From sequence record NC_048046.1: a stretch of DNA of 64,000 nucleotides, one strand, 5' to 3'. A program made the position numbers and the translations under genes. Below the pieces are notes generated by a model. It had not been told where the DNA came from and made no database searches. It saw only the letters and a list, made by a program, of their open reading frames with translations. Below, one piece after another: positions 25,330 through 29,336 of the stretch. Every line of letters starts with the position of its first letter. Positions within the stretch are counted from its first letter, which is position 1.

Positions 25330-26053
25330 ACAGGCCATCGTGATCGACCTCGGCGACACCCAAACCTATCACGACCTCGACGGCGTCCACGCCGACTACG
25401 CCGCCGGCATGCGCAAGCTGGGCTACGATGTCAGCCAGGAACTGCGCAAGAAGTTCCTGTCGCCCGGCACCGGACACCCGCTGAAGCGCGAGATGTACGA
25501 GAAGATCAAGGGCACCGACTTCTTTCGGTATCTCCCGATCATGCCCGGCTCGGTCGAGATGTACCGTGCCTTGAAGAGCACGAACGAGCCGGTCATCCTG
25601 ACCGCTTCGCCGCTGTTCGGCGCGACCGAGGACACCTACTACCTCAACCCGTATTGGCAGGGCGCCAAGTACCACAAGCGTGGATGGGTGGAGCACGTCT
25701 TCTTGCCACAGACCCGTCCTTACGAAGACTTCGCCTTCGGCATGCGTCGGACTCACTACTCCGATCACATCGCGATCGCCGATGAAAACTTCATCTGCAC
25801 GACCAGCAAGCGCAAGCACGAGTTCCTGCACCATAAGCACTCGAAGCGCCAACTGCTGATCGACGACAAGATCGAAAACGTCACCGCGTGGGCTGAGGCC
25901 GGCGGCCTGGGCATCCTTCACCTCGATCCCGAGACCACGATGCGGGCGGCGGCTCTCCTTTCGGGTCAGGACTTTGGCTTCGAAGGTCCCGGCGAATGGA
26001 AGCGCTGCGGTTCCAATGGCGGCTTCCTGTTTGATGCGCGGGTGCCCGAATGA
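25307..26053 (+). CDS. 5'(3')-deoxyribonucleotidase-like HAD (NT5C type); start may be downstream
   Basis: [48 protein letters not shown]. Confidence 0.8.
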
Positions 26054-26742
26054 TCGAGGTTCCCGGCATCCGCTCCTTTGGTTTCGTCACCGGATACGAG
26101 CGTAAAGGCCTCTACTCGATCGAGGAGGTTCACGCGCACATCGGCCCCGAACCGCGTGAATTCGATGGCGACATGGTCCCGATGGCGTCGCAGCGCTATG
26201 TGCTGTTCGCCCGAGCCCTCACCTGTGTTCGTTGCGGTCTTGTCGGCGCCTTCTACGCCAAGGAACGCAGCGCGCGCTATGTGAAGTCGACGGGCGAGTA
26301 CCGCCCGACCACGAACTCGTGGCACTTCAACCTCTACGCCCTGACCGACGGCCCGAGCCCACGTGCGATCCTGATGACCAAGGATCACATCGTACCCAGG
26401 GCACGCGGCGGCGCCGACGTTGACGAGAACTATCAACCGATGTGTTCGCCGTGCAATACGCGCAAGGGTCACCGCATCGAAGGCGAAACGGAGGAGGAAT
26501 TTCAGGCCTCGCCGGCGGAAGTGGCGCGACGTCGCACGATCGAGGAGGCTCGCGCTCGCAAGCGAGATCGTCATACCGAGGCGCGCAATCTCCTGATCAA
26601 GCAGGTCAAGCGCCTGTGTAAGGAGGTGGGCCTGGAACCGCCGACCGACAACGAGTTCTGTCGGATCGCCAATCGCAAGCTGTCGGCGCGGATCAGTGAT
26701 CTGCTCCTGATCAAGAACCAGACGGTGGTAGCCTATGCCTGA
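26050..26742 (+). CDS. HNH endonuclease
   Basis: [36 protein letters not shown]. Confidence 0.88.
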
Positions 26743-28209: not shown

Positions 28210-29115
28210 ATGAGCCTCGACTTCACCGCTCACGCCTCGGGCCTGGATCAAAGCGTCAACTTCGTGGCGCCGGCGGCTGACGGCATGTTCGAGGCTCGCT
28301 ATGTTCGGCGAGTCCGCGACTACTTCATCGCTTACCTGTCCAGCCATACGGGCTGCGACCAGTCCTGCCGGATGTGCCACCTGACCCAGACCCGGCAGAG
28401 GTCTATGGTCCACGCTTCGCGCCAGGACTATCTGGCCCAGGCCGATCGCGTGCTCGCCCATTACGACGGGCTGGATGAACCGGCGGACTTGGTCCACTTC
28501 AACTTCATGGCACGCGGCGAGCCTCTGTTGAACACGGGCGTCCGGCGTGACTGGCCCCGTCTTCATCGAGACCTCACCGCCAAGGCTCAGGAACGGGGGC
28601 TGGAAGCCCTGTTCAACATCTCGACGATCATGCCTGTCCAGGCGATCCTGAACCGCCTCACGGACGTTTTTCGAGATACCCAGGGCGTACGGCTGTACTA
28701 CTCGCTCTACTCGATGCGTCCTGAGTTCCGCCGGCGATGGCTGCCTTACGCGATGGACCCCGAACGTGCGCTCGACAAGCTGGCAGACTGGCAGGTCACG
28801 ACCGGCGGCGACGTTGTTCTGCATTGGTCCTTCATCGAAGGTGAGAACGACGACTTCGGTACAGTCGACGAGATCATCGAAGCCGTGCGGCGTCGCGGCC
28901 TGAAGACACGCTTCAATCTGGTCCGGTACAATCCGTACTCGCCGGCCCAGGGCAAAGAGCCCTCCGTTACCATGTTGACCGAACTCTTCAACCATCTCGC
29001 CTTTCACCTCGACAACGATCGTAGCGAATTGCTGCAACGGATCGATCTGTCCCGCATCGTTCCTCGCGTCGGCTTCGACGTGAAGGCGTCGTGCGGCATG
29101 TTCATGGAGGCGTGA
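28210..29115 (+). CDS. RlmN/Cfr-like radical SAM protein
   Basis: LSSHTGCDQSCRMC (CxxxCxxC), FMARGEP, FIEGEND, FNLVRYNP, VGFDVKASCG. Confidence 0.85.
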   Translation: MSLDFTAHASGLDQSVNFVAPAADGMFEARYVRRVRDYFIAYLSSHTGCDQSCRMCHLTQTRQRSMVHASRQDYLAQADRVLAHYDGLDEPADLVHFNFMARGEPLLNTGVRRDWPRLHRDLTAKAQERGLEALFNISTIMPVQAILNRLTDVFRDTQGVRLYYSLYSMRPEFRRRWLPYAMDPERALDKLADWQVTTGGDVVLHWSFIEGENDDFGTVDEIIEAVRRRGLKTRFNLVRYNPYSPAQGKEPSVTMLTELFNHLAFHLDNDRSELLQRIDLSRIVPRVGFDVKASCGMFMEA

Positions 29116-29336
29116 TGATCAACGTCGCTCACCACTTCGACGACATCGAGCGCCATTCGACGGCGATCGAATGCGAGTGTCATGGCTATGCGGCGCGAGA
29201 AGAGGCTTCGCCTTCGCGCGAAGAAGACCGCGCGGCCGGTGGTTGTGGTCGCCCAGGCTGCTGCACCGCAGCTTTCACCTGCCGCCTGTGCGGTAAACGC
29301 TGGATCGCGGCGCTGCCTGCGCCTGAAATGGAATAG
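29112..29336 (+). CDS. small Cys-rich protein
   Basis: CECH, CGRPGCC, CRLC. Confidence 0.65.
   Translation: MMINVAHHFDDIERHSTAIECECHGYAAREEASPSREEDRAAGGCGRPGCCTAAFTCRLCGKRWIAALPAPEME

Follow-up and report, generated by a model that had tools for sequence, protein, structure and literature searches.

Caulobacter phage CcrPW encodes, in gene gp297, a member of a distinct and widespread family that is sister to the RNA methyltransferases RlmN and Cfr and in which a tyrosine (Tyr42 of gp297) occupies the position of the so-called resolving cysteine, C118 of RlmN and C105 of Cfr. Judged from the sequences of its relatives, this tyrosine is a family trait and not a lesion. Because it is strictly invariant in an otherwise intact class A active site, it is best explained as a functional replacement. 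The reading we prefer, and to which we give about even chances, is that these proteins are active class A-type methylases that keep the methyl-cysteine carrier, use the tyrosine as a proton shuttle or radical relay, and act on a substrate other than A2503 of 23S rRNA or A37 of tRNA. The homology to RlmN and Cfr is ordinary in itself; what is unexpected is the strictly conserved swap of a class-defining residue, together with signs of a new substrate. A literature search returned no description of the gp297 family, nor of a natural tyrosine variant of RlmN or Cfr.

Location and features of gp297

The window analyzed here is a stretch of 64,000 nucleotides that corresponds to bases 186001-250000 of the genome of CcrPW, a jumbo phage of 308 kb in the genus Colossusvirus. 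The open reading frame at positions 28210-29115 on the plus strand encodes the 301 amino acids of gp297 and is 100% identical to NC_048046.1 214210-215115, where the existing annotation of the product is "Fe-S-cluster redox domain-containing". The initial annotation of this DNA had read 4 motifs from the open reading frame, CxxxCxxC, MARGEP, ASCG, and the segment IAYLSSHTGC, and all 4 are indeed there: gp297 has IAYLSSHTGC-DQS-C-RM-C (residues 40-56), MARGEP (100-105), and ASCG (293-296). The features discussed below are, in window coordinates:

28210..29115, plus strand: gp297, RlmN/Cfr-fold radical SAM protein of the Tyr-variant family phrog_27142, corresponding to RlmN 78-357
28333..28335, plus strand: Tyr42 codon, aligned with RlmN C118 / Cfr C105 (resolving cysteine) and invariant in the counts given below
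28354..28377, plus strand: CxxxCxxC radical SAM [4Fe-4S] motif (C49, C53, C56), followed by the family-specific H57-L58-T59
28507..28524, plus strand: M100-A-R-G-E-P105, SAM-binding GEP motif, with M100 equivalent to RlmN M176 and R102 in place of RlmN M178
29086..29097, plus strand: A293-S-C295-G296, C-terminal loop, whose cysteine corresponds to the methyl carrier C355 (RlmN) / C338 (Cfr)

The ATG of gp297 at 28210 lies four bases after the stop codon of gp298, and its TGA overlaps the ATG of gp296 as TGATG. The gp296 gene (29115-29336, plus strand) encodes 73 amino acids with seven cysteines (CxC ... CxxxxCC ... CxxC). It had no Pfam match and, among the loci examined, is common only to CcrPW and CcrColossus; the small protein could be a zinc- or iron-binding partner of gp297, or it could be unrelated. 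The same 2 phages have a nine-residue insertion, SELLQRIDL, in the radical SAM protein itself (gp297 residues 272-280, window positions 29023-29049), a stretch of lower model confidence (pLDDT about 62) that is absent from 29 of 31 other family members. No public RNA run was found to contain the gp297 stretch, the best run sharing 9% of the sampled words.

Fold and domain architecture

An AlphaFold2 model of gp297 built on the family alignment was confident overall (pLDDT 91.7, pTM 0.90) with its lowest confidence in the C-terminal loop, a segment that is mobile in RlmN as well. Foldseek searches with this model returned RlmN first (E 9e-15 to 1e-12, TM 0.70-0.75) and Cfr next at 1.4e-9, followed by a gap to pyruvate formate-lyase activase at 2e-7. 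VIA-align superimposed the model on the RlmN-tRNA complex 5hr7 with a Z score of 26.9 and an rmsd of 2.5 Å over 268 residues, model residues 1-297 matching RlmN 78-357, while Cfr reached Z 18.9 and the next, unrelated radical SAM enzymes Z 16.7 or lower. The gp297 model contains the RlmN-type fold, with its beta-extension, radical SAM core, and C-terminal loop. The initial annotation had called the protein RlmN/Cfr-like and proposed a structural comparison with the 2 enzymes, and this comparison bears the call out (Foldseek E 9e-15; Z 26.9 against RlmN and 18.9 against Cfr).

Radical_SAM was the only Pfam match to gp297 and fell below threshold (24.5 bits against 29.5). Among NCBIfam models, the RlmN equivalog TIGR00048 ranked first with 37.2 bits (E 1.5e-9) against a cut-off of 290 bits, and the Cfr models TIGR04432 and NF000424 gave 26.9 and 27.2 bits against cut-offs of 550 and 530. 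When a profile of the family was compared with the sequences of known structures, Cfr was matched at E 1.8e-15 and RlmN at about 5e-9. The phage protein profile phrog_27142, also named "Fe-S-cluster redox domain-containing", matched gp297 over its full length (E 1.6e-156, residues 1-300 against positions 2-300 of 300).

The N-terminal HhH2 RNA-binding domain of RlmN (RlmN_N, PF21016) had no Pfam match in gp297, and the structural alignment starts at RlmN 78. Since the model aligns only with RlmN 78-357, gp297 amounts to an RlmN without its N-terminal HhH2 domain, which has been described as "crucial" for rRNA binding (PMC13001441). RlmN_N is also absent from the longer members of the family. 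Domain fusions were considered and rejected, the longer homologs carrying an upstream HNH endonuclease or unannotated extensions in place of RlmN_N.

Tyrosine at the position of the resolving cysteine

Pairwise phmmer alignments with PDB sequences paired Y42 with Cfr C105, and a profile built from 117 family members paired it with both Cfr C105 and E. coli RlmN C118; in both kinds of alignment C295 fell opposite C338 of Cfr or C355 of RlmN. Tyr42 is 7 residues from the first cluster cysteine without a gap, the flanking SS and G are conserved, and the VSS of RlmN and the xLSS of the family precede the cluster at the same spacing. For RlmN crystal constructs with the C118A change, the Y42 column of the profile alignment shows the alanine. 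The register is secure because counting along the 3rf9 row reproduces C118, C125, C129, C132, and M176. The Cys-to-Tyr change at the resolving position, as claimed in the initial annotation, is therefore found in 2 alignments.

Since gp297 has exactly four cysteines (residues 49, 53, 56, and 295), there is no alternative resolving cysteine anywhere in the protein. An equivalent cysteine elsewhere would have undone the initial annotation's reading, and none was found, gp297 and many other members having these four cysteines only (29 of 149 representatives of the wider family described below have exactly four). No alternative is conserved in the family either; the one candidate, Cys41, occurs in 10 of 121 members, would face the other side of the strand, and was rejected. 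Class A radical SAM methylases are defined by 2 conserved cysteines (PMC9692996). The CxxxCxxC and GEP motifs of the class (C49/C53/C56 and G103-E104-P105) are invariant in the family, as is the putative methyl-carrier cysteine of the C-terminal loop, C295, which aligns to C355/C338. The second conserved cysteine of the class (C118/C105) is replaced by tyrosine in every member.

Size and distribution of the family

The invariance of the tyrosine holds at 3 depths of sampling. A word-based search retrieved 2355 related proteins at E ≤ 0.001, the best 120 of which (50-97% identity) were used for a residue count, and Y42, C49, C53, C56, and C295 were invariant in 121 of 121 of these close sequences. 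Loci fetched by the family motifs comprised 40 viral and 47 from bacterial genomes, 85 of them readable at the Tyr position, and a tyrosine was found seven positions before the first cluster cysteine in 84. The sole exception, from a Bryobacterales chromosome (L089), is a disrupted copy. Finally, 1.84 billion representatives were searched exhaustively with the profile; 417 clusters (50% identity) matched at E ≤ 1e-30, and among the best 150 of these the tyrosine and the C-terminal x-x-C-G-x-F were present in 149 of 149 motif-containing representatives. The check across homologs that had been proposed at the outset thus gave tyrosine in 121/121, 84/85, and 149/149 cases. Across the 117 sequences of the family alignment, 42 columns are invariant.

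The disrupted copy (L089:3950-5181) is split into 2 open reading frames and lacks the segment that precedes the cluster; no other member seen was evidently broken.

In a maximum-likelihood tree the Tyr clade is monophyletic with support of 100/98, and bacterial members are scattered among phage members. Examples of phage isolates that carry the Tyr form are CcrColossus, eight Brevundimonas jumbo phages, and the Pseudomonas phages 201phi2-1, Phabio, Psa21, D6, RVTF4, and Viktualia. In many bacteria the gene is chromosomal and lies beside ordinary genes. Homologs carry inconsistent database names ("rlmN", "RNA methyltransferase", "Fe-S-cluster redox domain"), which recognition of the Tyr family corrects.

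In bacteria the Tyr-family protein is a paralog of RlmN and not a substitute for it. A canonical RlmN above the curated cut-off was present in 5 of 5 bacterial carriers tested (Achromobacter, Polyangiales, Pararhizobium, Nocardia, and Acetobacter), and three further RlmN-like paralogs in these five genomes all keep the cysteine. No canonical RlmN was found in the CcrPW genome.

Conserved and altered residues of the active site

The residues that gp297 keeps from RlmN extend well beyond the cofactor motifs and include D13, E28 (RlmN E105), R34, S44, G48, Q77, M100 (M176), G103-E104, S138, S165, R174, P179, N213-D214, N236, N241-P242, G288, A293, and C295-G296. A second set has switched along with the tyrosine and is invariant within the family: R30 (V107 in RlmN), N98 (V174), R102 (M178), Y163 (Ala), Y167 (the His of SLHAP), H205 (Glu in RlmN), S294 (A354), and F298 (Leu). 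Others, R54, H57, H205, E250, and R286, are family-specific.

In a model of Cfr bound to rRNA, the residues within 5 Å of A2503 are M95, Y97, W101, S103, C105, S151, S153, M155, R327-F330, A337, and C338 (bioRxiv 10.1101/2025.09.18.677109). Their equivalents in gp297 are V32, R34, Y38, I40, Y42, N96, N98, M100, V284-V287, S294, and C295, with Cfr Q329 and F330 corresponding to R286 and V287. As read from this correspondence, the putative adenine pocket is kept in outline but is more polar and carries invariant arginines; it has changed, yet is conserved within the family. Outside the pocket, RNA contacts are made by Cfr R184 and by RlmN R206, a tRNA contact (PMC5130265), and neither residue is conserved in the Tyr family. 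The family is also acidic, with a median pI of 6.0 and a net charge of -5 (gp297 itself has a pI of 6.4), whereas the canonical RlmN proteins of the same bacterial genomes are basic (pI 8.1-8.8).

With RlmN (TIGR00048; C2-methyltransferase of 23S rRNA A2503 and tRNA A37; PDB 3rfa, 5hr7), gp297 shares the fold over RlmN 78-357 (beta-extension, partial TIM barrel, and mobile C-terminal loop), the cluster, the GEP motif, and E105, M176, and C355 as E28, M100, and C295. It differs from RlmN in having Tyr42 for C118, Tyr167 for the His of SLHAP, Arg102 for M178, Arg30 for V107, and His205 for Glu, in lacking HhH2, and in an overall identity of about 19-20%; the family further differs in being acidic rather than basic, in not keeping R206, and in coexisting with true RlmN in bacteria. 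Cfr (C8-methyltransferase of 23S rRNA A2503; TIGR04432; PDB 9p0p) is the best profile match and has in common with the Tyr family an NL[IV]RYNP motif and the G-x-D-[IV]-x-A-[AS]-C-G architecture of the loop, whereas C105 is replaced by Tyr, HhH2 is absent, and the pocket residues are changed.

Genomic context

Clustering of all open reading frames within 4 kb of the gene across 40 viral loci revealed no conserved phage neighbor, and nothing recurred except the gene and the shadow frames antisense to it; 2 further jumbo-phage contexts differ again, with an R2K ATP-grasp protein in one and SbcCD-like genes in the other. A phage partner that would supply a cysteine or an RNA-binding domain was ruled out by this lack of a recurring neighbor. 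Genes of tRNA metabolism do occur nearby: both CcrPW and Brevundimonas phage Marchewka encode a CCA-adding enzyme about 2.5 kb downstream of the gene, and CcrPW also encodes a Thg1-like enzyme about 11 kb downstream of gp297. Of the 40 viral loci, 6 have tRNA genes no more than 4 kb away, and none was found in the CcrPW window; as an RNA link for the Tyr family, this proximity is suggestive at best.

An HNH endonuclease, gp302, is encoded 1.5 kb upstream of gp297 (window positions 26050-26742, plus strand), and an HNH nuclease is likewise found upstream in Marchewka. In a metagenomic homolog, P0023, the radical SAM protein carries an in-frame N-terminal fusion to an HNH domain. There may be traffic of homing endonucleases around genes of this family.

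In about 20 loci from Myxococcota and Planctomycetota (for example L048:125-3096 and L064:862-3281), the Tyr-family gene adjoins a divergent conserved pair. One member of the pair is a protein of 500-700 amino acids with a TIGR02996 domain and STM4015-like leucine-rich repeats, and the other a sulfotransferase-like P-loop protein of about 295 amino acids with a GTGRCGTT motif. PADLOC returned no match for gp297 or for these 2 neighbors, and the three genes may form an unrecognized module. In the actinobacteria Wenjunlia tyrosinilytica and Nocardia lijiangensis (L087:2249-6451 and L058:2634-6125), the Tyr-family gene is part of a same-strand operon in the order PNP/MTA-phosphorylase-like protein, P-loop kinase, radical SAM gene, MazG, and CoaE/GrpB. 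This nucleotide-metabolism setting, seen in two related loci only, hints at a purine nucleotide substrate or at the removal of 5'-deoxyadenosine and SAH by-products.

Proposed mechanism and alternative explanations

The carrier cysteine of RlmN and Cfr is methylated by one SAM and then converted to a thiomethylene radical by way of a second SAM, both enzymes using the same two-SAM ping-pong chemistry. On current accounts, the other conserved cysteine, C118/C105, removes the C2/C8 proton and gives it back, which sets off radical fragmentation; the older disulfide model has lost favor, since the adenine lies between the two cysteines, one on each of its faces (PMC9692996, PMC13001441). M176 has been suggested to stabilize the thiyl radical of C355 (PMC9692996). 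If C118 acts, as in this view, as a general base and not as a disulfide partner, a tyrosine could fill its role. Tyrosine is unable to form a disulfide, is a monoprotic acid/base, and is a good H-atom donor to thiyl radicals. As its side chain is about 4 Å longer than that of cysteine, the geometry must differ from that in RlmN.

In the mechanism that we propose, the machinery retained by gp297 (the [4Fe-4S]/SAM site, GEP, E28, M100, and the mobile C-terminal C295) would generate a C295-CH2 radical, which would attack an sp2 carbon in the substrate; the substrate is most probably a purine. Tyr42, on the same strand position as C118, would take the proton as C118 does in RlmN and then return it, and/or quench the C295 thiyl radical, upon which the adduct would fragment and the enzyme turn over. 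The target would probably not be 23S A2503 or tRNA A37 recognized in the manner of RlmN; a purine nucleotide, whether free or bound, seems likelier, as does a nucleic acid site that is small or local. That C295 is methylated, that a methyl group is transferred, what Tyr42 does, and what kind of substrate is used are inferred from residue conservation and context, and the Tyr42 hydroxyl is placed by alignment register.

The simplest alternative is a plain phage RlmN or Cfr, which would methylate C2 or C8 of A2503 in host 23S rRNA or of A37 in host or phage tRNA and so tune translation during infection. We think this unlikely, even though it is the best placed of the competing explanations. The closest folds and sequence families are those of RlmN and Cfr, the equivalents of E105, M176, GEP, and C355 are conserved, homologs are already named rlmN in some databases, and the CcrPW region has a translation flavor, with its CCA-adding enzyme (a synteny repeated in Marchewka) and Thg1-like enzyme downstream and the tRNA genes near some viral loci. 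The profile scores are nonetheless far from those of either enzyme (37 bits against 290 for RlmN, 27 against 530-550 for Cfr), the RNA-anchoring HhH2 domain is absent (PMC13001441), Cfr Y97, W101, S103, and R184 and RlmN R206 are not conserved, the family is acidic, and its bacterial carriers retain a true RlmN. These same features lend indirect support to the suggestion in the initial annotation of a different substrate or a different chemistry, for which the absence of HhH2, the remodeled pocket, the acidic character, and the RlmN kept alongside all speak. A different chemistry could go as far as an RlmN-descended enzyme without methyl transfer, in which C295 and Tyr42 would take part in some other radical reaction, with a small molecule or a protein as substrate; examples are H-atom relay, the formation of C-C or C-S bonds, and a further kind of nucleotide modification. 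Some radical SAM enzymes, spore photoproduct lyase among them, are known to use Cys/Tyr H-atom relays. The cysteine of that lyase has been discussed (PMC9692996). The remodeled, family-invariant R30, R34, R54, H57, N98, R102, Y163, Y167, H205, E250, and R286 fit such a change, as do the bacterial neighbors (P-loop kinase, MazG, phosphorylase, or sulfotransferase-like P-loop protein). We nevertheless rank it just behind the plain methyltransferase and also regard it as unlikely, the [AS]-S-C-G-x-F loop and M100 (RlmN M176) being unchanged; that both are kept makes them the simplest signature of a methyl-cysteine mechanism.

Two explanations take the loss of the cysteine at face value. The initial annotation had raised covalent trapping of host rRNA or tRNA, in which a protein without a resolving residue would remain crosslinked to its substrate and disable translation. 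RlmN C118A/S and Cfr C105A/S mutants do accumulate a protein-RNA crosslink (PMC9692996, PMC13001441), and gp297 has no other cysteine to release one. The replacement, however, is always Tyr and never Ala, Ser, or variable, which indicates a functional side chain, and many bacteria carry the gene on the chromosome, in cells that contain RlmN's own substrates and to which an RNA trap acting stoichiometrically would be toxic; given this invariance and carriage, self-trapping fits poorly. It also lacks a PADLOC defense model match and an RNA-docking domain, a one-shot protein would have to equal the ribosomes or tRNAs in number, and C118 is a base in current views. We consider it very improbable and the weakest of the initial annotation's three proposals. 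An inactive relic or pseudoenzyme is scarcely credible: the family does lack a residue described as essential in RlmN and Cfr, but its cofactor motifs are all intact, 42 columns are invariant across 117 sequences, there are at least 417 clusters at 50% identity, the AlphaFold2 model is confident (pLDDT 91.7), and a single broken copy, that of L089, was seen.

Returning to the preferred reading of an active methylase with a tyrosine relay, a more specific form of it, possible but tentative, is that the Tyr family is a third class A branch that C-methylates a purine outside rRNA and tRNA, with Tyr as both proton and radical relay. To our knowledge, RlmN and Cfr are the only class A activities known. 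If the third-branch proposal is true, the candidate product would be a modified free adenine or guanine nucleotide, previously unknown, that jumbo phages as well as some Myxococcota, Planctomycetota, and Actinobacteria would produce. The missing RNA-docking domain, the remodeled and charged pocket, and the coexistence with RlmN together suggest that there is probably an unsought product in jumbo-phage infections, which include those of nucleus-forming Pseudomonas phages such as 201phi2-1. The Tyr lineage also bears on the debated step of class A catalysis, disulfide formation versus general-base deprotonation with radical fragmentation: if the family is catalytic, it would be a natural experiment showing that the "resolving cysteine" of RlmN and Cfr is a base and not a disulfide partner.

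Comparison with other phage proteins and radical SAM enzymes

Prokaryotic viperins (pVips) are stand-alone radical SAM enzymes that act on free nucleotides and are often encoded beside nucleotide kinases. They offer a working analogy only to the Tyr family, which lies beside a P-loop kinase and MazG in the 2 Actinobacteria, and they differ in belonging to another radical SAM subfamily (Z about 14.5), in having no methyl-carrier cysteine, and in their dehydration chemistry.

Closer to the family are 2 phage-encoded proteins, gp170 of Tunturiibacter phage Tunturi_5 (L043:2929-3927) and gene_104 of Klebsiella phage 05F01 (L042:2851-3780), which branch between RlmN and the Tyr clade in the maximum-likelihood tree. 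Both resemble gp297 in lacking HhH2 and in keeping an [AS]-C-G-M-F loop, and both differ from it in having none of the Tyr-linked switches R30, R102, and Y167. At the C118 position, Tunturi_5 gp170 has a Cys and 05F01 gene_104 a Val; in the latter protein two other pocket positions, 45 and 98 in family numbering, are cysteines. On the 05F01 genome, this gene is flanked by an ADP-ribosylation gene and nrdD.

One member of the Tyr family itself (L040, 34% identity, Tyr present) comes from a contig binned with a giant-virus MAG (IMGVR_UViG_GVMAG-M-3300023179-150_000001). It is nearly identical in its motifs to the member on a 624-kb viral contig (L039), and its assignment could be a binning artefact or could reflect a very large phage.
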